From positions 1-64,000 of IMG/VR virus record IMGVR_UViG_3300036770_006296: a stretch of 64,000 nt of DNA. One strand, written 5' to 3'. Positions 22,241 to 50,310 of the stretch are shown piece by piece. Position numbers and translations under genes: made by a program. Under the pieces are notes generated by a model that did no database searches, was not told where the DNA came from, and worked only from the letters and a program-made list of their open reading frames with translations. How positions within the stretch are numbered: position 1 is the stretch's first letter; each line of letters starts with the position of its first letter.

Positions 22241-22243
22241 TCT

Positions 22244-23251: not shown

Positions 23252-23257
23252 AAAGTA

Positions 23258-23266: not shown

Positions 23267-23284
23267 AGAAAATAAAAAAATAAA

Positions 23285-28885: not shown

Positions 28886-28914
28886 GAAACCTCTTCCCTA
28901 TAACACTATAAAAT
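28886..28914 (+). promoter_or_regulatory. GAAAC-N16-TATAAAAT promoter upstream of the polB N-half
   Basis: Same spacing as the other copies; also readable as TTGAAA-N17-TATAAA. Confidence 0.5.
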
Positions 28915-28918
28915 AGAT

Positions 28919-30325
28919 ATGATCATAGATATTGAGAATACAGGAAATGGATTATCTGTTTCACATTACACTGAGGAAGGGGAAGTTAATTTATTGAAAA
29001 TTCAGGTACCAAAGCATCTACAATTTGTTTGGCAAAAAACATCGGAGAACGACAAAAGTAAAGATAAGGAATGGAGGTCATGGGACAATTTTCCTGTGAA
29101 GAAAGTCACCACTAGCAAGTTTGACAAATATAGAGTGGTAGAAATATTAGAAGCGATAGATCCCGAAATAACAAAACCACTTTGGGATTACCAAACTCCT
29201 AAAAAATACTTTGTCGATATAGAGGTTGAGATCACTGACAATCGTGCGGATTCTTTAGATACTGAAAATTCTAAGAACCGGGTGCTTTCAATAGGGATGG
29301 CTTCTTCTCACGGAAAGATTCTGGTTATTGGACTCGAAGATATTCCGCAGGATAAAATATTAAAAATAGAAAAAAGGATAAAGGAACACTTTAAGGATCA
29401 GCCAGGAGAATGGACTTTTAATTATAGGAAGTTCGAGACTGAGTTCGATATGCTTTACACTTTCTTCTCTAAGCTAGTTCCTAAAATGCCTTTAATAACT
29501 GGATGGAACTGGTTTGGGTATGACTGGCCTTATCTTATCAATCGAGCAAAAAGATTAGGAATAGATCCAAAGATAGCTTCACCCAGTGGGATTCTCTTAG
29601 GAATGAACCAGATTCCGATGCACATACTAATGGTTGACTACCTGGACATCTATAAGAAATGGGATAGGGTTATAAAAATCAGAGAATCTAACTCATTAGA
29701 CTATGTTGCTAATCAAGCTATAGGGATAAAAAAGATTTCTTATAACGGAACATTAAAAGATTTATATGAATCAGATTTTGAGACATTTATCTTTTATAAC
29801 GCAGTCGACTGTGCTTTAGTTCATTATATAGATAAAAGGCTGGACACGCTTTCAACTTTCTTTAAAATTGCCGAAGTTAGTAGAGTGGAAATAAACAGAG
29901 CCCTATCACCTGTGTGGACCACTGAGGTACTGATGCTAAGAAAATTCCTGGAAAGAAAAAGAGTTATTGTCAACGAGAGAAAAGGAGAATCACATGTAAA
30001 GTTTGAAGGAGCTTATGTTAAGAAGCCAGAAAAAGGATTATATGAATGGATCGCTTGTTTTGACTTTGCCTCACTATATCCTAACACGATGATGCAATGG
30101 GGAATTTCACCAGAGGCTTATATTGGGAAGAATTTAAAAGAAATACCAGAAGGTGCAATTAAAACATCTTCAGGTGCGGTGTTTTACAACAAAGATGGGC
30201 AAGAACCTATACTAAGAGAAATATTAAAAGGACTTTATGCACAAAGGAAAGCTACTAAGAAAAAATATTTTGAGTGTGAAAAGGAAATAGAAAAAATTAA
30301 AAAAGCAATAAAATCAAAATCATAA
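28919..30325 (+). CDS. polB: Family B DNA polymerase, N-terminal half (3'-5' exonuclease plus motif A)
   Basis: ExoI FVDIEVE, ExoII ITGWNWFGYDWPYL, ExoIII YNAVD and motif A FDFASLYP. Ends in the first fingers helix (LYAQRKATKKK); motifs B and C are absent. Confidence 0.9.
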   Translation: MIIDIENTGNGLSVSHYTEEGEVNLLKIQVPKHLQFVWQKTSENDKSKDKEWRSWDNFPVKKVTTSKFDKYRVVEILEAIDPEITKPLWDYQTPKKYFVDIEVEITDNRADSLDTENSKNRVLSIGMASSHGKILVIGLEDIPQDKILKIEKRIKEHFKDQPGEWTFNYRKFETEFDMLYTFFSKLVPKMPLITGWNWFGYDWPYLINRAKRLGIDPKIASPSGILLGMNQIPMHILMVDYLDIYKKWDRVIKIRESNSLDYVANQAIGIKKISYNGTLKDLYESDFETFIFYNAVDCALVHYIDKRLDTLSTFFKIAEVSRVEINRALSPVWTTEVLMLRKFLERKRVIVNERKGESHVKFEGAYVKKPEKGLYEWIACFDFASLYPNTMMQWGISPEAYIGKNLKEIPEGAIKTSSGAVFYNKDGQEPILREILKGLYAQRKATKKKYFECEKEIEKIKKAIKSKS

Positions 30326-30328
30326 ATT

Positions 30329-30793
30329 ATGGCAAACACAGATAACAAATGTTCAGATCTTCCGGTGGAGGATTTTTACACAGGGTCGGAAGACACTTTA
30401 GGATTAGTTTATAACAAACAAAAAGAACTTCAGGAAAGATATGGGTTCGATTTCAAGGATTGGTCCATCAAGCAAATAGCAGATTTTTGGATGGTCAATA
30501 AGCATGCTCTTGGCGACGAGTTGAACGAAATGTTTGATGCACTAGGAGGAATCAATGATGGTATAGGATCTGCTGGTTGGAAATACTGGAAAGGTGACAA
30601 CAAAAAAACGGAGACTATGAAAATCTCAGATCTTTCAGAAGCCGACAAATTAGAGCTATATTATGAATGGATAGATGGATTACATTTTTACATGAATTTC
30701 GCTATTTCTATCGGTATGACAAGTAAGGATATTGTTAATCTTTATATGGCAAAAAATTCTGAAAATCACGACCGTCAGGAGAGAGGATACTAA
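30329..30793 (+). CDS. Dimeric all-alpha dUTPase/dCTPase (T4 gp56/dUTPase_2-like)
   Basis: [21 protein letters not shown] and [16 protein letters not shown]. Confidence 0.8.
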
Positions 30794-30812
30794 TATATAT
30801 AATAAAAAATTC

Positions 30813-31793
30813 ATGGAAAAATTACTAACACCAAACCCTAGGAGATTCTCATTGTTTCCTGTTCAGCACCACGATATGTGGACAATGTATAAAACTGCAG
30901 AAGCATCTTTTTGGACTGCTGAGGAAATAGATCTAGCTCAAGATATAACGCACTGGAGAGATAAATTAAACGATAATGAGAGATATTTTATTAAGCATGT
31001 TATTGCTTTCTTTAATAACTCCGATGGGATTGTTAATGAAAATCTAGCTGCAAACTTTTTTAATCAAGTACAATACCCAGAGGCAAGATGCTTTTATGGA
31101 TTTCAATTAGCAATAGAGAACATTCACGGAGAAACCTATTCTCTTCTTATTGATTCCTATATAAGAGACGAAGAAGAAAAGGAACATCTATTTAATGCTA
31201 TCGATACTGTTCCTTCAGTCAAAAGAAAAGCTGATTGGGCTATGAAATGGATAGAGAAAGGGTCATTCATAGAAACATTAATTGCTTTTGCTGCGGTGGA
31301 AGGAATCTTCTTCTCCGGATCATTTTGTTCCATCTTCTGGTTAAAGAAAAGAGGACTAATGCCGGGTCTATGTTTTGCTAATGAACTAATATCTAGGGAT
31401 GAAGGATTGCATTGTGATTTTGCTTGTTTACTTTACACTAGCCACATCGAAAACAAACTTCCGGAAGAAACAGTTGTCGAGATAATTAGTGAAGCTGTAG
31501 AGATCGAAAAAGAGTTTGTTACTTCGTCATTACCTGTAAGACTTATTGGAATGAATTCTGATCTTATGTGCCAATATATAGAATTTGTTGCAGATCGTCT
31601 ACTAATTTCTCTAGGATGTAATAAGATATACAACACTAAATGTCCTTTTGATTTCATGGTTAACATAGCCCTTGAAAACAAGGGTAACTTCTTTGAAGGA
31701 AGAGTGGGTTCATACCAAAAATCCGGTGTTATGGACAGTACTAAAGATAATAAGGATTCTGGCAAAGCCTTTACAATGGATGCTGACTTTTAA
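30813..31793 (+). CDS. nrdB: Ribonucleotide reductase class Ia beta subunit
   Basis: [21 protein letters not shown] (radical Tyr), [10 protein letters not shown] and ISRDEGLH. The likely start is the ATG at 30813; the track starts at 30732, overlapping the dUTPase gene. Confidence 0.95.
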
Positions 31794-31843
31794 TTTAGTA
31801 ACAGATCCCAATCGAATATATATAAGGCATATAATTAACAACT

Positions 31844-32170
31844 GTGGCTCAGAAAACTAGATCTCAATTTAAAGTAATATTTTCTCAGGGAAATATCCCA
31901 ACTCAGCAGGATTTCCATGACTTTATAGATAGTTATTGGAACTTGCCTGATGATGGTTCTTTTACTGGGATAACTGGACCTTCCGGACCTACTGGTGCTA
32001 CTGGGTTCGGTGTACAAGGAGCAACCGGGCCAACAGGATCTACTATGCTAACATCAGTACCTAGCGCAACTTCCTCAACAGGAACAACTGGAAATTACGC
32101 AGCTGCTTCCGGATCCTTTTATTTTCATGATGGATCTCAATGGTGGGTTATCAATGGTACTGGTTTCTGA
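31844..32170 (+). CDS. Small collagen-like virion decoration/fibre protein
   Basis: N-terminal FSQGNIPTQQDFHDFIDS module and GPSGPTGATG...GATGPTG repeats; preceded by GAATATATATAA (31814-31825). Confidence 0.55.
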   Translation: MAQKTRSQFKVIFSQGNIPTQQDFHDFIDSYWNLPDDGSFTGITGPSGPTGATGFGVQGATGPTGSTMLTSVPSATSSTGTTGNYAAASGSFYFHDGSQWWVINGTGF

Positions 32171-32277
32171 TTTTTATTTATTGGTATCCTCAAAGGGATA
32201 AAACCAACGATTTTAAAAAAAAATTAAAACAAGGGAAACTAATTGTCGATTAAAAAATAAAAAAATAAACTTGTAAA

Positions 32278-34644
32278 ATGGAAGTAATAAAAAGAGATGG
32301 CTCTAGAGAAAGAGTAAAACTGGACAAGATCCTTAGTAGGGTTAAGAAACAGTGTTATGGATTAAATATGGATTATATAGAGCCGATGGAGATAGCCAAA
32401 AAGGTTATTCATGGTCTTTATGACGGAATTACATCTATTGAATTAGATACATTGGCGGCGGAAACAGCTGCAGCACTAACTCCGACACACCCAGATTATT
32501 CTATACTCGCTTCTAGAATTTGTGTTACCTCCTTACATAAAAGAACACCAAAAAGTTTTTCACAGGTTATTGAGCAACTCTATAATTACATTGATCCTAG
32601 AACAGGATTAAAAGCACCTATGATTGCTGATGATGTCTACGAGATCATCATGAATAATTCAAAAGATATAGATTCTCAAATAATAACAGATAGAGATTTA
32701 GAATACGATTATTTTGGATTTAAAACTCTAGAAAAATCATATCTATTAAAAATAGATGGTCTTCCCGCAGAAAGACCGCAGCAAATGTTAATGAGAGTAG
32801 CTATAGGAATTCATAAAAATGATTTGCCCTCCGCTTATAAGACCTATGATTTAATGAGTCAGGGATATTTTACTCACGCGACACCTACATTGTTTAACTC
32901 TGGTACTAGGAGACCTCAACTTTCTTCTTGTTTTTTAGTTTCGATGGATGATGATTCAATCCAAGGGATTTATAAAACACTCTCTGATGTAGCTCAAATT
33001 TCTAAGAATGCGGGAGGTATTGGATTACACATACACAACGTAAGAGGTACAGGAGCTTACATTAGAGGCACTAACGGAACATCTAATGGTATTATTCCGA
33101 TGCTTAAGGTTTTCAATGAGACTGCAAGATACGTTGACCAAGGAGGAGGAAGAAGAAAAGGATCATTTGCTGTTTATCTAGAGCCTTGGCACTGTGACGT
33201 TGAAGATTTTTTAAATCTTAGAAAAAATCACGGTAAGGAAGAAATGAGAGCCCGGGATCTTTTCTTGGCTTTATGGACTCCTGATTTATTTATGGAAAGA
33301 GTAAAAGAAAATGGAGACTGGACATTGTTTTCACCAGATGAGGCACCAGGATTAGACGATGCTTATGGAGAAGAGTTCAATAAGCTTTATACTAAATATG
33401 AAAACGAAGGAAAGGGAAGAAAGACAGTAAAAGCCCAAGACCTTTGGTATAAAATTATTGAAGCACAAATAGAAACAGGAACTCCTTATATTCTTTACAA
33501 GGATTCTGCAAATATTAAATCTAATCAGAAAAATTTAGGAACTATTAAATCTTCCAATCTTTGCACCGAGATCATCGAGTACTCAGATTCAAAAGAAACT
33601 GCAGTTTGTAATTTAGCTTCTATTGCACTGCCTAAATTTATTACCCCTGGTAAGAAACCTAAATACGATCTTAATGCACTTAAAGATATAGCTTACACGG
33701 CTACAATAAATCTTAATAGAGTAATAGACGTTAATTATTATCCTACTAAAGAGACCAAGACTTCTAATATGAAGCACAGACCTATAGGTATAGGCGTACA
33801 GGGATTAGCAGATACTTTTGCTATATTAAAAATACCTTTCGATTCCGAAGAAGCTAAACAATTAGATAGGGATATTTTTGAAGCTATTTATTATGGCGCT
33901 ATGTGTGCATCAGTGGATCTTGCAGAAAAAGAGGGAGCATACCAATCTTTTAAAGGATCTCCTCTATCTAAAGGACTATTCCAGTTTGATTTATGGAATG
34001 AATCTCCAAGCACAAGATGGGATTGGGAAGCTTTAAGAGAAAGAGTAAAAACACACGGAGCTAGAAACTCATTATTGCTTGCCCCGATGCCTACAGCATC
34101 TACAAGTCAAATACTAGGTAACAATGAATGTTTTGAACCATTTACATCTAATATCTACATTAGAAAAACACTATCCGGAGAATTTCCAGTAGTTAACAAG
34201 CACTTAGTTAAAGAGTTAGTCAAACTAGGTATGTGGAGTGAATCACTTAGAGATAAGATAATTATCAATAACGGATCGGTCCAGGACATAAAAGAAATTC
34301 CAGACGAAATTAAGGAAATTTATAAGACTGCTTGGGAAATGAGCCAAAAGGTTATTATAGACCACGCAGCAATAAGAGCACCTTTCATTTGTCAAAGTCA
34401 AAGTATGAACTTATTTGTACAGGACGCAAATTTTGCTAAACTCTCTTCCGCACATTTTTATGGATGGTCTAAAGGATTAAAAACCGGAAGCTATTATATC
34501 AGAACTAAAGCTGCTACAACTGCTATAAAAGGATTAGGGATAGATACTAATAAGCAGGAAGATATAAAATCAGAGGATGAAAATTACAGCGACTTAGTTT
34601 GTAGTATAGATAATCCTGAAGATTGTCAAGCCTGCGGATCATAA
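32278..34644 (+). CDS. nrdA: Ribonucleotide reductase class Ia alpha subunit with ATP cone
   Basis: VIKRDG ATP cone, [41 protein letters not shown] and C-terminal CQAC. Confidence 0.97.
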
Positions 34645-34652
34645 ATAATATT

Positions 34653-35312
34653 ATGGAAGGAAAAAAGAATACCACTAAAAAAATAACAAACTTTAAAGAT
34701 TTCGTAAAAGATCACGGAGACATTGATGGTAAAGAAAATCTTGAAGAAATACCTTGTATAATTTTAGCTGGTCCTCCTGGGTGTGGCAAAGGAACACAAT
34801 CGAAAATAATATCTAAAGGTATGAGATGGAAACACGTTTCTACTGGCGATATATTAAGAGCTTCTGATGATAAAGAAATTAAAAAGATGATGAAGACTGG
34901 GGAATTACTTCCTGACGAATTAGTAGGAAAAGAACTAATCTCCTATCTTAAAGATTACTCTAAGCATCACGATCCTAAAGGATTTATATTTGATGGATAT
35001 CCAAGAAATCTTGCACAGAGAGATATTTTTGAAGAAATATGTAGAGTAAACAAATTAAAGCTTGTATATGTTTTCTTTTTAAACGGACCTGAGGATTTAT
35101 TAAAGAAGAGAATTATTAACCGAGGTAAATCATCGGGAAGATCAGACGACAAAAGCGAGAAAGCTTTTGAAAAAAGAATGAAAGAATATAATGAGCAGAC
35201 ACTTCCTATGATAGAATCAATGAGAAATGGTGGGAACTTTCTAGAAATATCTGCTACTAAAGATCTCGAGGATGTTTCTTCTTTAATATTTAAGAAATTG
35301 AATGAAATTTAA
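34653..35312 (+). CDS. adk: Adenylate kinase, short (LID-less) type, with an N-terminal extension
   Basis: GPPGCGKGTQ, HVSTGDILR, GFIFDGYPRN and GRSDD. The likely start is the ATG at 34653. Confidence 0.9.
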   Translation: MEGKKNTTKKITNFKDFVKDHGDIDGKENLEEIPCIILAGPPGCGKGTQSKIISKGMRWKHVSTGDILRASDDKEIKKMMKTGELLPDELVGKELISYLKDYSKHHDPKGFIFDGYPRNLAQRDIFEEICRVNKLKLVYVFFLNGPEDLLKKRIINRGKSSGRSDDKSEKAFEKRMKEYNEQTLPMIESMRNGGNFLEISATKDLEDVSSLIFKKLNEI

Positions 35313-35348
35313 TTTATAAACTAGTCTATAACTATTAAAAACAATAAA

Positions 35349-36581
35349 ATGGATAATGTCGAAAAAGAATCCCCTGTTGAAAATCGGGAAATAAATCAAC
35401 CAACACAACCAACTATCTGTTTAACTATGATAGTTAAAAACGAATCTCAAGTAATTAGAAGATGTATAGATTCGGTAAAAGATTATATCAGCTATTGGGT
35501 TATTGTAGACACAGGATCTACTGACGGAACACAAGATCTCATTAAAGAAATCATGGCTGAGTATAACATTCCCGGTGAACTACACGAAAGACCTTGGGTT
35601 GATTTTGGACACAATAGAACTGAAAATCTACGATATGCTAAGGATAAGGCAGATTACCGATTAATAATAGATGCGGATGATGTACTTTTCGTTGAAAATC
35701 CTGAAGTTAATCCATTCTTAAATGTAACCAAGGATTTCTATAAAATAAAAATAAGATTAGGTTCATTAGCATATTATAGATCTCAACTAATCAGAGGGGA
35801 TCAAGATTGGAAATATGTTGGTGTTTTACACGAATATCTTTCTGGACCAGAAGACATGGATCTCGAGGAGGACTTTTTAGAAGGAGTAGAAATGCACGCT
35901 TCAGTTTCGGGACACAATAGAGACATTAAAGGTAAAGACAAATACTATAATGATGCTTTAATTTTCGAAAAGGCTATTTTAACTACACCAAAAGAAGAAC
36001 TTCCCATAGATTTAGAAAGAAGATATGTCTTCTATATGGCACAAAGCTATAGAGATGCTGGAATGCACGAAAGATCTATCGAAGCTTATCAAAGAAGAGC
36101 TGATCTAGGAGGATGGAACGAAGAAGTTTATATTTCTAAATATTGGATTGCTAGACAAAAGCAGACAATGCAAAAACCCGACGAGGAAATAATTGATGCT
36201 TATTTAAAAGCTTGGGAATACAGACCAAATAGACTTGAATCATTATATCACCTTATTAAATTTCTAGGAAGTAGAAAGAGATATGCTTTAGCTTTTGCTC
36301 TGTCTGCAATAGGAATGAAAACTGGACCATGCTCAGATATCCTTTTCGTCGAAGATGAAATTTGGAAATGGAGAATGCCTGATGAATATTCAGTACTTGC
36401 TTACTATAACGGAAATGCAGAGGAAGCACGTAAGACTACAAGTATTATAATTAATTCCCCAGTATTCCAAAAAATAACTAAGGGTGAGCAAGATAGAATC
36501 CTTAAGAATTTGGATTTCTATAAAAAAGCTATAGACCGAAATACAGAAGAAGAGCCTAAAGAGGAATTACAGGAATCTTAG
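35349..36581 (+). CDS. GT2 glycosyltransferase with a C-terminal TPR-like domain
   Basis: CLTMIVKNE, VDTGSTDGT, IDADD and GVLHE, followed by TPR-like helices (FYMAQSYRDAG..E.SIEAY, AYLKAWEYRPNRLE). Confidence 0.85.
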   Translation: MDNVEKESPVENREINQPTQPTICLTMIVKNESQVIRRCIDSVKDYISYWVIVDTGSTDGTQDLIKEIMAEYNIPGELHERPWVDFGHNRTENLRYAKDKADYRLIIDADDVLFVENPEVNPFLNVTKDFYKIKIRLGSLAYYRSQLIRGDQDWKYVGVLHEYLSGPEDMDLEEDFLEGVEMHASVSGHNRDIKGKDKYYNDALIFEKAILTTPKEELPIDLERRYVFYMAQSYRDAGMHERSIEAYQRRADLGGWNEEVYISKYWIARQKQTMQKPDEEIIDAYLKAWEYRPNRLESLYHLIKFLGSRKRYALAFALSAIGMKTGPCSDILFVEDEIWKWRMPDEYSVLAYYNGNAEEARKTTSIIINSPVFQKITKGEQDRILKNLDFYKKAIDRNTEEEPKEELQES

Positions 36582-36589
36582 AGAATGTA

Positions 36590-36598
36590 GATATATAA
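36590..36598 (+). promoter_or_regulatory. Putative late promoter GATATATAA
   Basis: Intergenic, before a CTS-tagged ORF. Confidence 0.6.
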
Positions 36599-36614
36599 CA
36601 TAAAAAGTTATATA

Positions 36615-37097
36615 ATGAGAATTCTAAGATTTGTGGATTTTTTAAATGAGTCTGTTTATAACGTAGGAATTCCTCTTTACAGAGGATCTAGCTTCCAACC
36701 GGAAAGAACAATAAAAAGGAATAAGTTTATTGGGGAGCTTCAGGATTTCCTTACTCAAGTTGCTAACGGTACGCTTTCTGAAATCACAGTAATAGCTGAA
36801 ATACCAACACAAGGTAAGAACGCACCACAATATCTAAAAGATATTTATGCTGAAATGGGATACGATCCTAGCAGAGATCAGGAAGATATGTATGACCCAG
36901 AGACTGATGTTTACATGGGAGATAGAAGCAGAACAGCAGATGAACCTTCTAGAAATATATTCGTAGACTCTGAGTTTATTGTTAAAGATGTTGATCAGAC
37001 AAAAGGAGTTATTATTGCAGTTCCTTATTCTTTAAAAAGAAAGAATGTTACTGTAGAATTAACCCCCGATATGATTGACGAGGCTTACGTTAAATAA
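36615..37097 (+). CDS. Hypothetical protein with CTS-like N-terminus
   Basis: Begins MRILRFVDFLNES. Confidence 0.5.
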   Translation: MRILRFVDFLNESVYNVGIPLYRGSSFQPERTIKRNKFIGELQDFLTQVANGTLSEITVIAEIPTQGKNAPQYLKDIYAEMGYDPSRDQEDMYDPETDVYMGDRSRTADEPSRNIFVDSEFIVKDVDQTKGVIIAVPYSLKRKNVTVELTPDMIDEAYVK

Positions 37098-37115
37098 TTT
37101 AGCACTTACTAATAC

Positions 37116-37475
37116 ATGGATTTTGATGATTTTTATATAGCAAAAATCGGAGACCATACTTTCATATTAGAAGATTGCAAAGACTTTCCAAAAGGACTTT
37201 CAGAAAGAGAGCATCTCCTCGAAAATGAGGGGATGCTTTTTAAGTTTAATGATCCTGGACATAGGTCCTTTCATATGAAAGGATGTTTAATACCTTTAGA
37301 TATTATCTTTATTAAAAAAGGAAGAGTTGAAAAAATATACCACAACTGTAATCCATGTGAGCTTAATGAGTGTGATCAATTTGAACACGAAGATGCTGAT
37401 ACAGTAGTCGAGCTTATGGGAGGAACTTGCAAGAAAAATAACATCAACGAGGGGCTCATCTACAGGCTCATGTAA
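37116..37475 (+). CDS. DUF192 family protein
   Basis: KGLSERE.L.ENEGMLFKF......FHMKGCLIPLDIIFI...VVELMGG. Confidence 0.8.
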   Translation: MDFDDFYIAKIGDHTFILEDCKDFPKGLSEREHLLENEGMLFKFNDPGHRSFHMKGCLIPLDIIFIKKGRVEKIYHNCNPCELNECDQFEHEDADTVVELMGGTCKKNNINEGLIYRLM

Positions 37476-37504
37476 GAAACTTTTCTCCCTTATTCATTTA
37501 TAAT
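37476..37504 (+). promoter_or_regulatory. GAAAC-N16-TTTATAAT promoter upstream of the topoisomerase II B subunit
   Basis: Bipartite motif with conserved spacing. Confidence 0.55.
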
Positions 37505-37510
37505 CAATAT

Positions 37511-39298: not shown

Positions 39299-39317
39299 AG
39301 TTATCTAACAATAAGTA

Positions 39318-39326
39318 GATATATAC
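39318..39326 (+). promoter_or_regulatory. Putative late promoter GATATATAC
   Basis: Immediately before the ATG at 39331. Confidence 0.55.
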
Positions 39327-39330
39327 AAAG

Positions 39331-40077
39331 ATGATTTTAAGGTTAAAAGATTTTGTTAGTGAGCAAGAAAACGTAGGAGCTGAAACTCCTCAAAGCTCTC
39401 TTTCTACTAGTTCTAGTAAGAACCTAAAGATAAATTGGACTAAGCCAGACCTAGCTATGGAGATTGATCACTATGACGATAAAGCAAAATTAGAGTTTTA
39501 TCAGCACAACATAACTATAGGAAACAAGGACATTGGTAAAACATCCCCAAGAGCAACTAAATTTTATAAATATATTTCAGAGCCTTTTAGAAAGGGTCAC
39601 TTTGAAAATATTCCAATAGTTTCTGAAGGGAGCTTTGATGTTAACAGTATACAGAACTTTATGGTTTATGAATACGACAACATCGTAAACGGAGCATACG
39701 GAAGAGCATATGGTGATGTACTTATAAAAACAACCGAAGAATTAAAGAAAAGTGGATCTATAAGTTTACCTGCTCCGATCGTAATAAAATTTATAAACTT
39801 CGGAGAAACTAGAACATCAGAGGAAGCAAGCTATTATCTATTCTCCGGAAACAGAGTCGCTAACTTGGCTCTTCAATATAACATACCTATAAAAGCATGG
39901 GTTGTTGACCTAATTCCTTCCAGAAGGGATGTTAGACAATTTGCAGATCAATCTGGTGCTTCTGCAAATCCTACTAAATTTAAGAAGCTTCTTAGAAGAG
40001 AAACAGGGAAAGAAAACATCGACGACTTAAATGCTAGGGAAAGATTCAAAATCATCCAATCCCTTAAGAATTTTTAA
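39331..40077 (+). CDS. Hypothetical protein with CTS-like N-terminus and a possible ParB/Srx-like domain
   Basis: MILRLKDFVSEQ leader; LPAPIVIKF...YYLFSGNRVANLA...IKAWVV resembles a ParB-N core. Confidence 0.4.
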   Translation: MILRLKDFVSEQENVGAETPQSSLSTSSSKNLKINWTKPDLAMEIDHYDDKAKLEFYQHNITIGNKDIGKTSPRATKFYKYISEPFRKGHFENIPIVSEGSFDVNSIQNFMVYEYDNIVNGAYGRAYGDVLIKTTEELKKSGSISLPAPIVIKFINFGETRTSEEASYYLFSGNRVANLALQYNIPIKAWVVDLIPSRRDVRQFADQSGASANPTKFKKLLRRETGKENIDDLNARERFKIIQSLKNF

Positions 40078-40091
40078 TCTACCTTTATGGT

Positions 40092-41009
40092 ATGAAATAC
40101 AACACTAGAATGGGTTATTGTTGTCTTTGTCTTTCATTAGAAAAAGAAAAAGTCACAACAAACAGAGGAATGGTAAAAAAGACGTTCCTAGAAAAGGGAC
40201 TTCCTTACGTCTCTGAACTTGCTGTAAAGAACACGGAAGATCTTATAAGAATAATAAATTTTAACGCCAAAAGTGGAATTAGAATGTATAGGATGAGTTC
40301 TGATATGTTCCCTTGGATGTCTGAATATGAAATATCTGATCTACCGGACTACGAAATCATAGATCTTAACCTTAAAATAGCTGGAGATATAGCTAGGGCT
40401 ATGGACCAGAGACTAAGCTTCCATCCGTCTCCATATTGTGTAATTGCTTCAGAAAATCCATCTGTTGTTGAAAAATCTATAAAGGAACTCAGACAACACG
40501 CAGAGATAATGGATCTAATGGGATTAGAAAGAAGCCACAAGTATCCAATAAACATACATATAAACACAACTAAGCCTTCCAAGGAAGATGCTGCTAAAAG
40601 ATTTTTAAAATCTTTTGAACTACTTCCTGAGGGGGTAAAGAAGAGATTGGTTGTTGAAAATGACGATAAGAAAAGCCAGTTCACTCCTACTGATTTGTAT
40701 AATATGATATATAAAGAGTCAGGGATTCCTATAACATATGATTTTTTACATCATAAATGTAATCCGGACGAGATATCTGAAGAAGAAGCTTTAGATCTTT
40801 GTATATCAACATGGCCCGAAAATACAATAGCTCTAACTCATTTTTCAGATTCTAGAAAACTTTACGAAGATTCTGGTGCTAAAGAGGTAGCACACTCCGA
40901 TTGGATTTGGAGTAAAATAGAAACTTATGGTCGAGTTTTCGATATAGAATTAGAGGTCAAGATGAAAGATCTTGCCTTACTGAAATATTTAGAGGAATGG
41001 AAGGAATAG
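40092..41009 (+). CDS. uvsE: UV-damage endonuclease (UvsE/UVDE)
   Basis: MGYCC, YRMSSDMFPW, RLSFHPSPY, RLVVENDD, YDFLHH, HFSDS, HSD, IELEVKMKDLAL. Confidence 0.92.
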   Translation: MKYNTRMGYCCLCLSLEKEKVTTNRGMVKKTFLEKGLPYVSELAVKNTEDLIRIINFNAKSGIRMYRMSSDMFPWMSEYEISDLPDYEIIDLNLKIAGDIARAMDQRLSFHPSPYCVIASENPSVVEKSIKELRQHAEIMDLMGLERSHKYPINIHINTTKPSKEDAAKRFLKSFELLPEGVKKRLVVENDDKKSQFTPTDLYNMIYKESGIPITYDFLHHKCNPDEISEEEALDLCISTWPENTIALTHFSDSRKLYEDSGAKEVAHSDWIWSKIETYGRVFDIELEVKMKDLALLKYLEEWKE

Positions 41010-41212
41010 AAGAAATAGATTTATCCAAATCTAAATGGAACCCAGAAAATGAGATTTATCTCATGTCTGTCGTAGAAGGTATAAAAGAAAATTATCCTCA
41101 GATAGATCTGGACGAAGAGCTAAAAGAATCTGGTTATTCAATAGACGAATTAGCAGATTCTAAAATTATTGTTTCATTTATGAAAAAGCTCAATGAAAAA
41201 TATCCAGATTAA
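40997..41212 (+). CDS. Small acidic hypothetical protein
   Basis: 71-aa ORF overlapping the end of uvsE. Confidence 0.45.
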   Translation: MEGIEEIDLSKSKWNPENEIYLMSVVEGIKENYPQIDLDEELKESGYSIDELADSKIIVSFMKKLNEKYPD

Positions 41213-41348
41213 TGCTTGTGCTATTAAAAAGGATATCTTTTATGGCTCTTGCTTTAGCTAGCGGGTTTTTTATCTATGCTCTTTTATTTCTGATAGAGTT
41301 TCCTAAAATAATTTCTGGTATTTTTTATTCTTTTAAAAAACATTAAAG

Positions 41349-42386
41349 TTGATTAATTACTACGAAATTTTAGGCGTCCAAGAAAATGCCGACCAGGAGT
41401 CTATAAAGAAAGCTTACAGACAAATGGCTAAGAAATTCCACCCCGACCGGAACAAAGATCAAGGGGCGGAGGAAAGGTTCAAGAAAATTACAGAAGCTTA
41501 TGAAAACATAGGAGATCCTACTAAGAGGAGAGAATATGACAATAAGAGAAATTTTAAAGATCATTTCTTCGGCGGGTTTGAAAATTTTAATCACTGGAAT
41601 CAAAAAGATCCTTTTGCAAGCCACTATAATCCAGGATTTCCTCAAGATCCTAAGGGAGGACACATTAGTATCACGCTAAAAGTGACATTGAATGATGTGC
41701 TAAATGGAGTAGAGAAGAAAATCAAATTAAAAAGAGATAAAAAATGTAAATCATGTGAAGCCACGGGAGCAGAAGGAGGTGCGTCCTTTCAAACTTGCGG
41801 AAATTGTAACGGAACTGGACAAATTACAATAAATAAAACCAATGGATTTGTACAGATTCATTCAGTTACCGTTTGTAATATTTGTAGAGGCAATGGGAAA
41901 ACTATACTGGAATATTGTATGAGCTGTCTAGGTAAGGGATTGATAGCAGAAGATGATCTGATTGATATAAATATACCCGCAGGATCTTCAGATGGAATGC
42001 AATTTGTAGTGGCAAATAAAGGAAACGAGGGTAAAGGAAACGGATTACCAGGGGATCTTTATGTGAAGATAAGTGAGATCGAGAATGAAAATTTTGTGAG
42101 AAGAGGAATCGATCTTATATCAGCAAAACAAATAACCTTTATAGACGCTGTTCTTGGAACTAATATAGATGTTGAGATGCCGGACGGGGAGGAATTAAAA
42201 GCTATTATTTCCCCAGGTACAATTCCGGGTACCATCCTTAAATTTTCTCAAAAAGGAATACCTAATATGGGATACGGAGGCAGGGGAGATTTCTTGGTGG
42301 AAATAAACGTAAAGATTCCTTCAGATCTTAATAAGGAAGAAATAAGATTCATGGAGGAGTTAAGAGAGTACGATATGTTTAAATAA
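41349..42386 (+). CDS. dnaJ: DnaJ (Hsp40) co-chaperone, full type I architecture
   Basis: J-domain with HPD, a G/F-rich region, four CxxCxGxG-type repeats (CKSCEATG, CGNCNGTG, CNICRGNG, CMSCLGKG) and a C-terminal domain. Confidence 0.92.
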   Translation: MINYYEILGVQENADQESIKKAYRQMAKKFHPDRNKDQGAEERFKKITEAYENIGDPTKRREYDNKRNFKDHFFGGFENFNHWNQKDPFASHYNPGFPQDPKGGHISITLKVTLNDVLNGVEKKIKLKRDKKCKSCEATGAEGGASFQTCGNCNGTGQITINKTNGFVQIHSVTVCNICRGNGKTILEYCMSCLGKGLIAEDDLIDINIPAGSSDGMQFVVANKGNEGKGNGLPGDLYVKISEIENENFVRRGIDLISAKQITFIDAVLGTNIDVEMPDGEELKAIISPGTIPGTILKFSQKGIPNMGYGGRGDFLVEINVKIPSDLNKEEIRFMEELREYDMFK

Positions 42387-42395
42387 ATTTAATTA

Positions 42396-42722
42396 ATGAT
42401 GGAATTCTTTTTTTATATACTTGCAGTTTGGGGACTAACCCACATACTAGTAGCATCCAAAATAATGGAACCCACTAGAAATTGGCTTCTTATAAAAGCT
42501 CCCTTTTTTGGAGATATGCTTAATTGCTACCAGTGCACCTCCTTTTGGTCATCTATGATTTTATACTTTATGTTTAACGACTTAAATGTGGGGGGACTCT
42601 ACTTTTATCTTAATGGAATCAAAATAGGATTTGATTTCTTATTAATTTCTTTTATTGGATCTGGTATAGTGTCATTTATATCCATAATAATGTCAATCCT
42701 GATAAATAAATCTAAAGGATAG
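42396..42722 (+). CDS. DUF1360-like membrane protein
   Basis: Hydrophobic helices with LAVWGLTHIL...MLNCYQCTSFW. Confidence 0.6.
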   Translation: MMEFFFYILAVWGLTHILVASKIMEPTRNWLLIKAPFFGDMLNCYQCTSFWSSMILYFMFNDLNVGGLYFYLNGIKIGFDFLLISFIGSGIVSFISIIMSILINKSKG

Positions 42723-42727
42723 GTTTC

Positions 42728-42736
42728 GATATATAC
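42728..42736 (+). promoter_or_regulatory. Putative late promoter GATATATAC
   Basis: Immediately before the ATG at 42740. Confidence 0.55.
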
Positions 42737-42739
42737 ATT

Positions 42740-44287
42740 ATGGAAAGAAAAGTATTATCATTTAGCCAATTTTTAAATGAACAAGAAACCGGAACAACCG
42801 GAGCCACAGGATCTTCAGATTCGGGAAATCTAGGTAGACCTGAAACGGAAAGAGAAGCAAAATCAAGGATCGCAAAAAATATAGTACAATCTGTTTTTGG
42901 CGATATAGGAGGAAGTGGTGGTGTTGATAGTTATATCGACCAAACTAAAGAGGTAAAAGAATCTTTACCTTACAAAGGATGCGGAGTATCTGATCCATAT
43001 AAATTAGAGAAGACCCCTCTTTCTGTAATGACTATTAAGCTGCTTCTTAATTATTTACAAGAGAAAAAAGTTGGTGACTATACAAGAGTTATAAACGAAC
43101 TAAATGAGAAGAGAGCGGTAATAATTGGTATAAGAAATAGAATAGCAACAAAAAAGGAAAGTGCAAATCAAGATAGATTTTGTGATGCCTTATATTTCAT
43201 ACCTGGCAATGCAAAAGATGGAACTGAAAGTGCTGGCGCTACTGGAGCTACCGGAGCTACTGGAGCATCGTCTGGTTTTATGCAACAAAAGAAAAATGAA
43301 TCTCTATCCCTTTACGACTACATAGAACAAAGAATAACGGAATTAGAAACGGTTTCTGAATCTGGACTTTGGACATTTGAGGATTTTGCTCGGATGAACG
43401 GGGAAAGAGAATTTTTAATTAAAAATAGGGATCTTTTAGAGTCCGGAGAAATATCGGAGAATGATTTCGTAGAGTTATACGAGGATTTCTTAGGGATAGG
43501 CGGATTCTTTAAAGGAGCTTGGGATAAAGGAAAACAAGCGGTTAACTGGGTAGGTAAGAAACTTGGATTGGTCGACGATAAACCTAAAACCGGGAAAGTT
43601 GATATGGATAGTGAGGACGATACTAAATCTTCTTCACAAAAACAATCTGGTGCTGCCGGTGCTACTGGTGCTACTGGTGCTACTGGTCCAACTCCCCCAT
43701 CTGACTTAGGTGATAAAATTGAACCATACCAAATAACAACAGTTGCTAGTTTAGCTTACTATGGTAAAAAGCCTATGAATCCTAAAGGTGTAGGTATTAA
43801 GCTACCTGGGGATACTCTTTATGTATTACAGGAAAGTACATTAGGAGGAAAAACTAAATATAAGATGATGGTGGAGGCCGAAAAAATTAAAGTAGGCAGA
43901 TATCCTATAGGGGTTACTAAATATGAAACCTATAAACCAGCTGAAACATATACCGAAAGTTGTGGAATGCAAATACACAGATCCTCAACTAAAGGCGTAG
44001 GGGTTTGTATAGGACCCTGGTCAGCAGGATGCCAAGTATTTTCTGATTATGCTGAATGGCAAGAATTTATATCTAAAGCTGAAAAGGAATCGATGAATGC
44101 CTCAAAATTCCTATATGGATTGATCCAACTGGATGACATACCAGAGGAAGTATTAAAGTCTGCAATAATTGGTTTACCGTATAGCCCTCAACAAGAACAA
44201 CAACCTGTTGCTCAAAACGTTACAGGCGGAACTCAAGTAAAAGGATCAGGAAAAGACGTAAGAAAGGTCGGTTTTAACGAGGAATAG
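42740..44287 (+). CDS. CTS-tagged protein with an L,D-transpeptidase (YkuD)-like catalytic motif and GAT repeats
   Basis: VLSFSQFLNEQ leader; IIGIRN...RFCDALY; GMQIHRS...PWSAGCQV (His...Cys); two (GAT)n linkers flanking an insertion. Confidence 0.55.
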   Translation: MERKVLSFSQFLNEQETGTTGATGSSDSGNLGRPETEREAKSRIAKNIVQSVFGDIGGSGGVDSYIDQTKEVKESLPYKGCGVSDPYKLEKTPLSVMTIKLLLNYLQEKKVGDYTRVINELNEKRAVIIGIRNRIATKKESANQDRFCDALYFIPGNAKDGTESAGATGATGATGASSGFMQQKKNESLSLYDYIEQRITELETVSESGLWTFEDFARMNGEREFLIKNRDLLESGEISENDFVELYEDFLGIGGFFKGAWDKGKQAVNWVGKKLGLVDDKPKTGKVDMDSEDDTKSSSQKQSGAAGATGATGATGPTPPSDLGDKIEPYQITTVASLAYYGKKPMNPKGVGIKLPGDTLYVLQESTLGGKTKYKMMVEAEKIKVGRYPIGVTKYETYKPAETYTESCGMQIHRSSTKGVGVCIGPWSAGCQVFSDYAEWQEFISKAEKESMNASKFLYGLIQLDDIPEEVLKSAIIGLPYSPQQEQQPVAQNVTGGTQVKGSGKDVRKVGFNEE

Positions 44288-44315
44288 AAACTTTAATCCA
44301 TTATCCCAGTATAAT
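44287..44315 (+). promoter_or_regulatory. GAAAC-N16-AGTATAAT promoter upstream of the topoisomerase II A subunit, clamp and polB C-half
   Basis: Bipartite motif with conserved spacing. Confidence 0.6.
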
Positions 44316-44338
44316 TTTCATCAGTGAAAATATTTTAA

Positions 44339-45754
44339 GTGGATAAGAGGATAACAATTTCAGATCAGATAAATCAGGATTACCGTAAGTACGCATTATA
44401 CGTTATTCAAAGCAGAGGCATTCCTAATTTCTATGATGCACTAACACCTGTACAAAGACTAATTCTTCAGAATTCCCCGAGTAACTTCAAAAAAACAGTA
44501 GGTGTAATAGGTGAAGTTTTTAGTACTGGCTTATACCATCATGGTGATTCTTCAATGGCTCAAGCCATATCCAAGTTAGCGAGGCCTTTTTCGTGTGCTG
44601 AACAGATATTATTGGGAGATGGATTTTTTGGAAGTCCAGTCAATCCAGTTCCATCTGCTCCTAGATACACCCAGGTAAAAATCTCTAATAAGTATAAAGA
44701 GATAATAGAAAAATATAAGGATCTAAATGTACCCAACGAGGAGGGTGGATTTGATTGGATCCATGTTGACTATCCTGTGGGTCTTTCCACTCACATTGTT
44801 GGGATAGCAGTTGGATATAAATCTAACGTGCTTCCACGAAAGCCTGAAGATATAGTTGCATACATAACAGGAAATAAATCTAAGAAATTAAAACCATATT
44901 TTAGGGGATTTAAAGGAAAGGTAACAAGAATGGATTCTCTTAAATCAGCTTGGCTTATAGAAGGGGACACTGAAATAGATGTTACAACTAGAACATTCAA
45001 GATAAACTCTATATCACCCCTTCAGAGATATGAATCTTTTTTTATTAGGCTCAACAACATTCTGGAAAGAAAATCCCTTAATTACAAGATGGATAATTTC
45101 TCAACTGATGAAGTTAAGATCACGATAAAGTTTAGGTGCACAGATCAGGAATTCAAGGAAGTCTCAGATCTAATAGCTAAAGAAACAAAACAGATAGTTA
45201 CTGAAAATATAGTTTTCGTGCGGGATGGATCGGTCTTGGAATATGATTGTATAGAAGATTATTTAGAAGACTTCATTGTACACAGGGAAAGAACTATTTT
45301 AAAAAGATATGAGAGGGATCTACTTTATCTTGACGATGAATTAGAATTTTTAGAAGCTAAGCTTAAATTTCTTATTTTTATGCAGGAAAGGAAGAGAGGA
45401 GTTGATGAGGTTTCAGCATTTCTTAGCGATTATAAAAGGGAAATATCCAGAAGGCTAGAATCCATATCTTTAATAAAGCTAACAAAGGAGGAAATAATTA
45501 AGACAAAAGAAGAAATTAATTCAATAAAATCTGATATAAAGATTAAGAATCAAGAAATAAAGAAACAAAGAGATAGAGTTAAAGTTATCGAAAAAGAAAA
45601 TTCTTTATTAAAAAAGAAAACGACTTCAAGAACAACTTCGCTCTTAGGAGAATTAAAAGAAGAATTTCATAATGGAATAAGAATATTTGATCCAGAAGAA
45701 GAAATAATAGAAGAAGTAGAACAAGAAAACGAATTAAATATAGAAAATGAGTAA
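44339..45754 (+). CDS. Type IIA DNA topoisomerase, breakage-reunion subunit (GyrA/ParC; T4 gp52-like)
   Basis: YRKYALYVI..RGIP...DALTPVQRLIL, YHHGDSS, GDGFFGS and SAPRYT (catalytic Tyr); no gyrase CTD. Confidence 0.92.
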   Translation: MDKRITISDQINQDYRKYALYVIQSRGIPNFYDALTPVQRLILQNSPSNFKKTVGVIGEVFSTGLYHHGDSSMAQAISKLARPFSCAEQILLGDGFFGSPVNPVPSAPRYTQVKISNKYKEIIEKYKDLNVPNEEGGFDWIHVDYPVGLSTHIVGIAVGYKSNVLPRKPEDIVAYITGNKSKKLKPYFRGFKGKVTRMDSLKSAWLIEGDTEIDVTTRTFKINSISPLQRYESFFIRLNNILERKSLNYKMDNFSTDEVKITIKFRCTDQEFKEVSDLIAKETKQIVTENIVFVRDGSVLEYDCIEDYLEDFIVHRERTILKRYERDLLYLDDELEFLEAKLKFLIFMQERKRGVDEVSAFLSDYKREISRRLESISLIKLTKEEIIKTKEEINSIKSDIKIKNQEIKKQRDRVKVIEKENSLLKKKTTSRTTSLLGELKEEFHNGIRIFDPEEEIIEEVEQENELNIENE

Positions 45755-46514
45755 GAAACAAGCAACTTGGAATTTTAGGATTACTAATCCTGCCAATTTT
45801 ATGTCTTTCCTTAAAAAATTAAAATTGGTAGACAAAAGCGTTCCTCTAGAAATAGAAGGAGGTAATTTATTTGCTAAAGTAAGAACACCAGATAAATCTG
45901 TTATTAAGTATGTCAGTGTGGATATTAATGATATACTGGAAGGAGATTTTCCTCCAAATAGATTAAAAATAGGTATTCTTGAGATAAGTAAGTTAATCGA
46001 TGTGTTTAAATATTTTGGACCGGAAGAAGAACTTAACTTGACAGTTGATTCCCAGCCTTATGATTCAGATCTAATCGCAACGGGATTAAAATTCTCTTCT
46101 TCATCATTAAACATATTTGTTAAATGTGCAGATATAAGTTTACTTGCTTATATAGACGATAATATACAAAGGCAGATACATTCAACTGAAGGATCGGAAG
46201 TTAATTTTGAAATATCAAAAGAAAACTTCCAAAAAGTATCTTCATTAACGGGGATAGAATCTAACTCTGAAGAACTCCTAAATTTTGATATCGAAGAAAA
46301 TGGGGTGACTATCAGAGGAAATTCATTCCAATACAATTTAATAAAAGGCAAAAAGCCTAATGGATTTTCTAGCTCTAGTGTTTATACAATCTACAAAAAC
46401 CAATTCTCTTATATAGATCAGGAAAATTCGGAGATACACTTCCATGACAATAGAATATTAGTTAAATCAACCGAATCTGATTCTATAATAGCAATAGGTT
46501 TAGTAGAGGTATAA
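45747..46514 (+). CDS. Putative sliding clamp (T4 gp45/PCNA-like)
   Basis: 255 aa with a repeating beta-alpha-beta pattern; KIGILEISKLIDVF resembles gp45 AIYDLxxFL; sits directly upstream of the polB C-half. Confidence 0.55.
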   Translation: MSKKQATWNFRITNPANFMSFLKKLKLVDKSVPLEIEGGNLFAKVRTPDKSVIKYVSVDINDILEGDFPPNRLKIGILEISKLIDVFKYFGPEEELNLTVDSQPYDSDLIATGLKFSSSSLNIFVKCADISLLAYIDDNIQRQIHSTEGSEVNFEISKENFQKVSSLTGIESNSEELLNFDIEENGVTIRGNSFQYNLIKGKKPNGFSSSSVYTIYKNQFSYIDQENSEIHFHDNRILVKSTESDSIIAIGLVEV

Positions 46515-46515
46515 G

Positions 46516-47685
46516 ATGGAAGAAATAGATTACATGTCAATGAGCTTGGAAGAGCTCAATCAAAAACTGCAGGAGTTCCAAAAAAAATCCTCCGATTTTT
46601 ACAATACTGAACAGGGCATTAAACTAACTCTTAATAGTATATACGGAGCGACGGGAAATCAATACTTTGCTCTTTTCAATCCGGACGTAGCAGAGAGTGT
46701 AACTCTACAAGGTCAAGATATATGGAAATTTGCAGAGAAAATAGTTAACAAGTACTTCAATGAGATGTGGCACCTTGACACTGAGCTTCATGAGAAGATG
46801 GGTGTTAGGAACGTAAGAAAGATTACTCTTGATTTTATTATATACGGGGACACTGACTCTAACTATATAAACCTTGGAGCAGTAATGGACTCTTGTGAAT
46901 TTGATTACGATCCTTTTGATTTCGTAAAAAAACTCAACGATTATAGGCTCAAGGACTACATAAAAAAATGTTACGACATCTATTCTAAGAAATGGAATAC
47001 TGAGAACTATCAAGACTTTGAACTGGAAAGTTTATCTTATGCAGGTATATTCTTAGGAAAAAAGAAATACGTACTACACATAGCATGGCAAGATCCTAAT
47101 AAGGATTTATTCCCTAGACTATCTAAAATTAAATCCACAGGTATCGAATTAGCACAGGGAGGTACTGCTCCTTTTGCTAGGGAGAAACTAACATTCCTCC
47201 TTAGACATATCTTTGAAAAGGGTAAGTCATTTGATATAAGGGAATTTGTAAAGATACTGAAGGATATCAAGAATGAATTTAAAGTACAAAGTCCGGATCA
47301 AATATCAATAGGTACTTCAGTTAACAATATAGAAAAGTTCATAGTAAATGATACAAGTAAGTTCGAGGTTGCTAAGGGATGTCCAATGCACGTTAGAGCT
47401 GCTGGATATCATAACTATATCTTGAATAATTCTAAACATAAAGCAAAGTACAGCTTAATAAGATCCTCTGAGAAGATAAAATACTATTACGTTAAAGTTA
47501 ACAACGAAAGGGAGAATAACGTATTCGGATATCTTAATGGTTCTTATCCCTACGAGTTTGCTCCTCCTGTTGATTTCGACGAGCAGTTTAATCGAGTTAT
47601 CCTTGATCCTATAAATAGATTCATTGAAGCTATGGGATATACACCGCTTTCTCCTAATCTTTTACTAGTTAGGGCTCTTTTTTAA
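46516..47685 (+). CDS. polB: Family B DNA polymerase, C-terminal half (motifs B and C, thumb)
   Basis: KLTLNSIYG (motif B), YGDTDS (motif C), KKKYV, KSTGIE and HVRAA. Confidence 0.9.
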   Translation: MEEIDYMSMSLEELNQKLQEFQKKSSDFYNTEQGIKLTLNSIYGATGNQYFALFNPDVAESVTLQGQDIWKFAEKIVNKYFNEMWHLDTELHEKMGVRNVRKITLDFIIYGDTDSNYINLGAVMDSCEFDYDPFDFVKKLNDYRLKDYIKKCYDIYSKKWNTENYQDFELESLSYAGIFLGKKKYVLHIAWQDPNKDLFPRLSKIKSTGIELAQGGTAPFAREKLTFLLRHIFEKGKSFDIREFVKILKDIKNEFKVQSPDQISIGTSVNNIEKFIVNDTSKFEVAKGCPMHVRAAGYHNYILNNSKHKAKYSLIRSSEKIKYYYVKVNNERENNVFGYLNGSYPYEFAPPVDFDEQFNRVILDPINRFIEAMGYTPLSPNLLLVRALF

Positions 47686-47728
47686 TTCTTTGCATATTAC
47701 CATAATGTTTTTTTGCTGCTTCTAGTTG

Positions 47729-47737
47729 GATATATAA
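47729..47737 (+). promoter_or_regulatory. Putative late promoter GATATATAA
   Basis: Intergenic, before AAA+ gene 2. Confidence 0.6.
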
Positions 47738-47756
47738 GATATCTAAAAAAATAAAG

Positions 47757-50308: not shown

Positions 50309-50310
50309 TT

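Follow-up and report, generated by a model that had tools for sequence, protein, structure and literature searches.

How is a replicative DNA polymerase produced when its gene lies in two parts, some 16 kb from each other? This question is raised by a 64,000-nucleotide stretch of viral DNA, referred to here as the window, which comprises positions 1-64,000 (the first 64 kb) of the 206,617-bp linear IMG/VR record IMGVR_UViG_3300036770_006296. The record is ~81 % complete as estimated by CheckV, and the window has a G+C content of ~34 % with nearly all genes on the + strand. Two open reading frames (ORFs), designated the polB N-half and the polB C-half (Table 1), each encode part of a family-B DNA polymerase (PolB) and are separated by a stop-to-start gap of 16,190 bp containing 17 ORFs, all on the + strand and most of them serving nucleotide metabolism and replication. 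An earlier reading of the sequence alone, termed here the original prediction, had proposed that polB is divided in this way between two genes about 16 kb apart; both ORFs are present on the + strand with the peptides that it quoted, the N-half ending in QRKATKKKYFECEKEIEKIKKAIKSKS before its stop codon and the C-half beginning with MEEIDYMSMSLEELNQKLQEFQKKSSDF. The reading frames of both halves and of all neighbouring genes are open under translation table 11, so that no other genetic code is needed for the window.

The motifs of a family-B polymerase are distributed over the two ORFs. The N-half contains the three exonuclease motifs, Exo I (FVDIEVE; D100, E102), Exo II (WNWFGYDWPY; N197, D202) and Exo III (YNAVDCALV; Y293, D297), followed by motif A (DFASLYPN; D382, S385, L386, Y387, P388), and these exonuclease and motif A residues are invariant in an alignment of 36 relatives. 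The C-half contains motif B (KLTLNSIYG; K36, N40, S41, Y43, G44), motif C (YGDTDS; Y110, D112, T113, D114, S115) and the KKKY motif (G181, K182, K183), all of them invariant in an alignment of 33 relatives. Searches against Pfam matched PF03104 (exonuclease) to the N-half (E 7e-10) and PF00136 to both halves (E 1.5e-16 for the N-half, 9.4e-17 for the C-half); within PF00136 the N-half accounts for profile positions 16-147 and the C-half for 139-238 plus 254-411. Of the full-length PHROG profile phrog_262, the N-half takes up 111-497/498 and the C-half 489/493-840. The two ORFs tile one family-B polymerase without overlap or loss. Half-length PHROG families also exist and fit each ORF end to end (phrog_2062 for the N-half, E 2e-78; phrog_1918 for the C-half, E 1e-69), so halves split in this way are already frequent in phage databases. 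The original prediction had considered that either half might have a different partner elsewhere in the genome; a search of the whole 206,617-bp record with the PF00136 and phrog_262 profiles found no polB piece beyond the two halves.

The break falls, as originally proposed, at the tip of the fingers, which here corresponds to T4 gp43 residues ~504-512. Against structures of RB69 gp43, residue 464 of the N-half aligns with RB69 residue 503 and residue 8 of the C-half with RB69 residue 532, and a 20-sequence alignment places the break at T4-type (RB14) residue 504/505, in the loop at the fingers tip that links the two long helices; motif A lies upstream of the break and motif B downstream. Mapping of the split point across relatives gave the same position throughout: IMG/VR contains 77 related loci, each of the 76 complete N-half ORFs ends at one and the same point (462-485 aa), and a check of the next 10 kb after each of these 76 N-halves found no C-half.

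Modelling of the two products as a complex, which had been suggested as a check on their association, gave an ipSAE score of 0.81 for the N-half and C-half, the best of three controls being 0.00. Of 80 solved complexes, 58 reached the mark that this score passes, as did 2 of 110 mismatched pairs; these counts are only rough here since own alignments were used. Between runs at least 93 % of contacts agree, and the predicted local distance difference test (pLDDT) value of the partner is at least 85. In the modelled interface, N-half residues 362-394 (the motif A strands) face C-half residues 108-121 (motif C) and 160-187, and N-half residues 432-468 face C-half residues 4-71. The claim that the terminal helices are complementary agrees with the model, in which the two helices are predicted to pack on each other, N-half residues 432-468 touching C-half residues 4-35 at intervals of three to four residues. 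The modelled interface holds ~370 contacts, a size typical of an obligate complex.

In family-B polymerases, as in the PhiKZ structure (PMC13648687), motif A and motif C each contribute one catalytic aspartate to a single active site. Because these aspartates are divided here between the N-half (motif A) and the C-half (motif C), neither half can polymerise alone. We consider it very probable that the replicative family-B polymerase of this freshwater jumbo phage is an obligate two-subunit enzyme built from separate N and C chains, their physical association being predicted from the model and by analogy with other split polymerases. From subunit N (468 aa) would come the exonuclease for proofreading together with the N-terminal domain, motif A of the palm and the first of the two long fingers helices; subunit C (389 aa) would contribute the other fingers helix, which bears motif B, along with motif C of the palm, the thumb and a C-terminal tail, the probable clamp-binding element. 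The chains would associate non-covalently and re-form one palm beta-sheet, their terminal helices packing antiparallel as the fingers, with no protein or RNA splicing involved. The N-half would open a replication and nucleotide-metabolism block which the C-half closes, as the third gene of a topoA-clamp-polB-C unit, and the same GAAAC...TATAA promoter-like element before both units would coordinate their expression.

The halves could instead be partly autonomous, with the N-half acting as a stand-alone proofreading exonuclease and the C-half working separately with the clamp, assembling transiently, so that the split would serve regulation or subunit exchange. Such autonomy would suit the translational coupling of the C-half to the clamp gene and its conserved C-terminal tail, the placing of the halves in different predicted units, and the separation of the halves by more than 100 kb on opposite strands in megaphages. 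It is nevertheless improbable, given that motif A in the N chain and motif C in the C chain each provide one catalytic aspartate to the same active site, and that the modelled interface is very large and resembles that of an obligate complex.

The same arrangement is found well beyond this record. Both halves occur in 21 of 24 large IMG/VR contigs, and 20 of these 21 match the window in order and strand, their gaps measuring 12.8-21.5 kb; synteny of the genes between the halves extends down to ~55-60 % polB identity. In one distant relative (G013; loci L082/L089) the order is reversed: the C-half is upstream, ~18 kb from the N-half and on the same strand. This order is also seen in Lak-B9 (GenBank MK250028, 509527-520038), where the C-half lies ~8 kb upstream of the N-half, again on the same strand. 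Among deposited genomes the halves are separated by 1.2 kb in Tenacibaculum phage pT24 (gp165/gp168), 2.2 kb in Chryseobacterium phage MA9V-1 (ORF135/ORF138), 2.4 kb in Sphingomonas phage PAU (gp105/gp110) and ~10 kb in LR756500 (462 kb). They lie ~221 kb apart in Lak-A2, and on opposite strands with gaps of ~101, 132 and 281 kb in LR745206, LR756502 and LR756504, respectively. LR756500 is the closest deposited relative, at 41 % protein identity, and a megablast search of the N-half gene against 50,697 GenBank phage records for near-identical DNA gave no match. A word-based protein search returned 748 half-length database homologs of the N-half and 1,070 of the C-half; the length limits of this search (0.55-1.75 times the query) make full-length (unsplit) relatives invisible to it, and the absence of unsplit forms is based on the comparisons of deposited records and of IMG/VR contigs and loci. 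The arrangement is not confined to this genome: a large clade shares it as a fixed feature, and the records of PAU, pT24 and MA9V-1 already label each half as DNA polymerase.

This conservation bears on whether the two ORFs might be remnants of a decaying polB in a phage that uses another polymerase. The incompleteness of the record leaves room for such an enzyme, and in related jumbo phages of group 2.2 a further, minimal split Pol III alpha has been reported by Iyer et al. (PMC7824862). Decay is very unlikely all the same: the exonuclease and polymerase motifs are all invariant across relatives at just 32-60 % identity, both ORFs are intact in dozens of independent contigs, and the cultured, viable phages PAU, pT24 and MA9V-1 have the same split.

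Protein trans-splicing, in which a split intein would join the two finished products as happens with 'fractured' genes, was also considered, in view of the split-intein and intein insertions that occur in polB of relatives, but at motif C of the C-half. As the original prediction had stated, no intein flanks the break in the window. Pfam searches found no Hint or intein domain in either half, and PolB homology reaches within 4 residues of the N-half end (residue 464 of 468) and 8 of the C-half start (residue 8), which leaves no space for an N-intein of ~100 aa or a C-intein of ~35 aa. The termini at the break are charged helices and not intein blocks, and trans-splicing is on these grounds scarcely credible.

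Several relatives have a C-half that is broken at or near motif C (YGDTDS, window residue ~114). These are L091 (G001; 10,813-14,000), L090 (G006), L089 (G013; 1074-2882), L005 (LR756500; 31721-35118) and L097 (Lak-A2; 3908-6056). Some of the interrupted C-halves form a single longer frame of 563 or 601-603 aa that is intein-like in appearance, and others form two ORFs with 1.7-2.2 kb between them. The database homologs P0236 and P0237 carry PF14890 (Intein_splicing). As judged from these reading frames, the polymerase of such relatives would come in three pieces; the C-half of the window has no insertion at motif C.

Assembly error or chimerism in a single contig, which its metagenomic origin might suggest, is almost certainly not the cause of the separation, because the same order, with a similar gap, recurs in 20 other large contigs from different samples, and the C-half region is near-complete in 16 DNA sequencing runs (0.86-1.00 of sampled words; mostly freshwater), 13 of which, from ten studies, are not a possible source of the record.

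The gene directly upstream of the C-half was identified by fold and by homology, as its 255-aa product has no Pfam or PHROG match. An AlphaFold2 model (pLDDT 81, predicted template modelling score 0.69) shows two tandem beta-alpha-beta-beta-beta domains, within the ~230-270 aa range of sliding clamps, and its top Foldseek matches in the PDB are all PCNA or beta-clamp (E ~1e-10, template modelling scores of 0.57-0.71). A profile search of the PDB with the family found archaeal PCNAs at E 0.005. The product is homologous to PAU gp109, itself a predicted gp45-like clamp according to Kazlauskas et al. (PMC4889955). The predicted fold together with this homology supports the assignment as a sliding clamp, and the clamp and topoisomerase A genes that were originally placed beside the C-half are found there. 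A hidden Markov model (HMM) built from 10 clamp sequences found the homolog of LR756500 and gave no match to the C-half neighbours of PAU, pT24, MA9V-1, Lak-A2, LR756504 or G013; pairwise BLASTP joins PAU gp109, pT24 gp167, MA9V-1 ORF137 and the LR756500 neighbour to the family of the window. A gene of this family lies directly upstream of the C-half, in the gap, in five lineages (the window clade, LR756500, PAU, pT24 and MA9V-1), and no clamp was recognised among the C-half neighbours of Lak-A2, LR756504 and G013. Candidate AAA+ clamp-loader-like frames occur elsewhere in the record. The ATG of the C-half lies 1 nt past the stop codon of the clamp gene, with AGAGG 6 nt upstream of the ATG. 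From these junctions, topoA, clamp and polB-C probably form one translationally coupled unit in which polB-C is third.

The halves had been placed in separate transcription units joined by a shared GAAAC promoter, and the motif itself is borne out in part. A minus-strand ORF that is conserved in relatives lies directly upstream of the N-half, and a new + strand unit must therefore start at the polB N-half. The form GAAAC-N14-20-TATAA has 12 matches in the window against 3.0 expected, and the tighter GAAACYTT form has three against 0.29 expected. Intergenic copies lie directly upstream of genes for a gp32-like single-strand DNA-binding protein (12122), polB-N (28886), the large subunit of ribonucleotide reductase (RNR) (32235), topoisomerase II B (37476) and topoA (44287), and of one further gene (53636), and the spacer in the first five of these is N16-19. 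The GAAAC...(T)ATAA element is kept before polB-N and topoA in relatives with diverged flanks, and in two relatives (G012 and G008) with an insertion between the clamp gene and polB-C, a GAAAC...ATAAA element is found directly upstream of polB-C. These comparisons lend support to a promoter shared by both units, as suggested by the motif. The separateness of the units fares less well: the C-half of the window has no promoter of its own, being third behind topoA and the clamp gene, and read-through is possible because all of the genes between the halves are on the same strand. A second recurrent motif, (T)AGATATATAA, occurs in many short intergenic gaps (Table 1) and, in reverse orientation, upstream of the minus-strand ORF; it resembles the T4 late-promoter-like element TATAAATA and may represent a second promoter class.

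The origin of the break was examined in an IQ-TREE phylogeny of 20 polB sequences in which split halves were concatenated. Eleven split forms of the wider group stand together on one side of a branch with 100/100 support, and the split polymerase of Aeromonas phage 44RR2.8t nests within Straboviridae (100/100). Because 44RR2.8t nests there and the group of the window lies across a separate 100/100 branch, the finger-tip break has become fixed on no fewer than two independent occasions. Support for separating near-gap from far-gap forms is weak (77/92); in the tree G013 and Lak-A2 are sisters, and polB of Serratia phage PS2 is split elsewhere, at ~residue 369.

The break probably arose once, in the common ancestor of PAU, pT24, MA9V-1, the ~200-250-kb freshwater phages, the Lak phages and the megaphages of >600 kb, and the gap would later have widened from ~1-2 kb to 13-21 kb in the window clade and to >100 kb in megaphages. 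We tentatively join these observations in one history, to which we give slightly less credence than doubt: a single ancient break in the lineage running from ~210-kb cultured jumbo phages to megaphages of >600 kb, perhaps made when a sliding-clamp cassette inserted into the polymerase gene. The gap would then have served as a growth zone in which a replication and nucleotide-metabolism island accreted (1.2 kb, then 2.4, 10 and 13-21 kb), and this island would afterwards have broken apart, leaving the halves 100-280 kb from each other on opposite strands, while the clamp gene and the C-half with its presumed clamp-binding tail stayed translationally coupled. If this history is true, the whole huge-phage lineage would have the obligate heterodimeric polymerase as a synapomorphy and a handy marker.

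Several points weigh against the reading of the halves as an obligate two-subunit enzyme fixed by one old break. The complex score may reflect memory of single-chain PolB structures, and would then show that the fold can be rebuilt, which is likeness rather than binding. With the record ~81 % complete, a second polymerase elsewhere in the genome is conceivable. The tree holds 20 taxa only, the word-based search is blind to full-length proteins, and unsplit members could lie inside the clade. The transcription units are drawn from motifs, and generic scans of 28-48 kb do not define them: a sigma-70 scan gave 67 promoter-like sites against 75.5 in shuffles and an intrinsic terminator scan 11 sites against 9.7, neither being an enrichment, and only one terminator-like hairpin (41248-41275) sits in an intergenic gap, the sole long one. 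Four RNA-labelled runs gave just three or four short contigs (150-240 nt), one identical over 46772-46922 in the C-half and two spanning the topoA/clamp junction; because the libraries may contain DNA, perhaps as carry-over, these contigs show neither transcription nor transcript ends.

The features of the window are listed in Table 1. The gene for the nucleoside triphosphate (NTP) pyrophosphohydrolase/dUTPase-like protein is next after polB-N in nearly all relatives and also follows the N-half of PAU.

Table 1 Positions of the polB halves, neighbouring genes and promoter-like motifs in the 64,000-nt window
Feature	Position	Strand	Remarks
Minus-strand ORF just before polB N-half	28561-28866	-	Conserved in relatives
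GAAAC-N16-TATAA promoter-like motif	28886..28911	+	8 nt before polB N-half start
polB N-half	28919..30325	+	468 aa; N-terminal domain, 3'-5' exonuclease, motif A, first fingers helix
NTP pyrophosphohydrolase / dimeric dUTPase-like	30329..30793	+	PAU gp106 ortholog (38 % identity, E 3e-31)
RNR small subunit	30732-31793	+	
108-aa ORF between RNR subunits	within 30732..34644	+	
RNR large subunit	32278-34644	+	Own GAAAC...ATAA motif at 32235
Adenylate kinase, family-2 glycosyltransferase (GT2), 160-aa unknown ORF, DUF192 protein	34623..37475	+	
Promoter-like motif GAAACTTT-N15-TATAA	37476..37503	+	Upstream of topoisomerase II B-like gene
Type II topoisomerase ATPase/Toprim subunit (GyrB/gp39-like; topo II B)	37511..39298	+	
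248-aa unknown ORF, UvdE UV endonuclease, 71-aa ORF, DnaJ, DUF1360 protein, 515-aa unknown ORF	39331..44287	+	
Promoter-like motif GAAACTTT-N15-TATAA	44287..44314	+	Upstream of topoA-clamp-polB-C
Type II topoisomerase A subunit (gp52-like)	44339..45754	+	8-nt overlap with clamp gene
Sliding clamp (by predicted fold and homology)	45747..46514	+	255 aa; predicted two-domain PCNA/gp45-like fold
polB C-half	46516..47685	+	389 aa; motif B on second fingers helix, motif C in palm, thumb, conserved C-terminal tail (...NLLLVRALF)
(T)AGATATATAA motif	4785-4827, 16423-16455, 23252-23284, 31794-31843		Intergenic
(T)AGATATATAA motif, further gaps	36582-36614, 39299-39330, 47686-47756, 62824-62865		Intergenic

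The DnaJ protein encoded in the replication block (41349-42386) is full-length, with J, zinc-finger CXXCXGXG and C-terminal domains, and is kept in all relatives examined. The RNR large subunit, topoisomerase II B and topoisomerase II A genes of relatives G006, G001 and G012 are cut into two or three pieces by insertions of ~0.5-1.5 kb, which are mobile introns, inteins or homing endonucleases; the copies in the window are uninterrupted. Two paralogous modules, at 20383-24889 and 47757-51249, each encode a MoxR-like AAA+ ATPase (534 and 497 aa, respectively) and two DUF2201 (VWA-like/putative metallopeptidase) proteins; one is upstream of the polymerase block, the other immediately downstream of the C-half, and the duplication is also present in relatives. 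The window further encodes the gp32-like single-strand DNA-binding protein (12190-13155, preceded by a GAAACTTT...TATAA motif) and a UvsW/ResIII-type SF2 helicase (14881-16422), both of which are T4-type replication and recombination components. Very large ORFs without a Pfam match at 3-10928 and 58505-63999 (1545, 922, 777, 729, 703 and 378+ aa) probably encode virion or other phage-specific proteins.

Half-size polB ORFs in contigs of jumbo phages and megaphages are readily miscalled as truncated, as duplicated or as 'two polymerases', and once an obligate two-gene enzyme is recognised, the number of genes, the estimates of completeness and the polB trees are put right for a phage lineage that is widespread in freshwater and gut. 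A much older second fixation, independent of the first, at the same loop as in T4-like phages supports this loop as the structurally permissive cut site of a family-B polymerase. The lineage of the window provides a graded natural series of gene dispersal after a split, from 1 kb to >250 kb, and the pair is a natural system in which to ask how the chains of a polymerase meet without co-translation and whether the coupling of the C-half to the clamp gene matters.

The nearest known counterparts are the bicistronic gp43A/gp43B polymerases of the T4-like Aeromonas phages 44RR2.8t, 25, 31 and 65 and Acinetobacter phage 133 (Petrov et al. 2006/2010, in the part summarised in PMC3061061). The break of 44RR2.8t lies in the same finger-tip loop (~T4 residue 510, against ~504/505 in the window), the halves are similar in size (498 + 391 aa against 468 + 389 aa), each half has its own start and stop codon, and no intein is present. 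The T4-like halves are adjacent cistrons, 2 bp to 3 kb apart (PMC3061061), whereas the window has a gap of 16,190 bp, in keeping with the original claim that its separation exceeds that of T4-like splits; in 44RR2.8t itself the gap between 43 and 43B is 49 bp, against 16.2 kb with 17 genes. The T4-like clamp gene (45) is not inside the split, and the 44RR2.8t polymerase belongs within Straboviridae, whereas that of the window does not descend from Straboviridae gp43 in the tree and stands in a separate, deep-branching group (100/100).

PAU, pT24 and MA9V-1 share with the window the polB lineage, the break point and a C-half directly preceded by the same clamp family, and in PAU the N-half is followed by the same NTP pyrophosphohydrolase/dUTPase gene. 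They differ in that the gap is just 1.2-2.4 kb with two to four genes, and their halves are ~25-29 % identical to those of the window. Their split is not discussed in the literature searched.

In phage PhiKZ, DNAP-N (gp82) and DNAP-C (gp50) form a stable 1:1 complex, as seen by cryo-electron microscopy (PMC13648687), and there too the family-B polymerase of a jumbo phage comes from two distant genes, motifs A and C being carried by different chains (PMC13648687). The PhiKZ break lies in a large palm insertion, leaving the fingers wholly in the C subunit, whereas the first fingers helix of the window is in the N-half; the PhiKZ enzyme also belongs to a different polB clade, and an RNase H-clamp fusion (Rhc) takes the place of a ring-type clamp gene. 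In Methanothermobacter, two polB genes 85 kb apart form an active enzyme (Kelman et al. 1999, as far as cited in PMC3061061); by the same account this polymerase is archaeal and its break lies in the palm, ~83 residues C-terminal to the finger-tip position. An engineered split of the Pfu polymerase likewise lies near the finger tip, and its separately expressed fragments rebuild an enzyme with wild-type kinetics (PMC3061061), unlike the window in being artificial, bicistronically cloned and provided with a much shorter finger tip. The features that appear undescribed in the literature searched are the independent ancient break, its clade-wide fixation, the clamp gene upstream of the C-half within the gap in five lineages, and the dispersal of the halves from ~1 kb to >250 kb; the two-subunit mechanism of a family-B polymerase is itself of a known kind.

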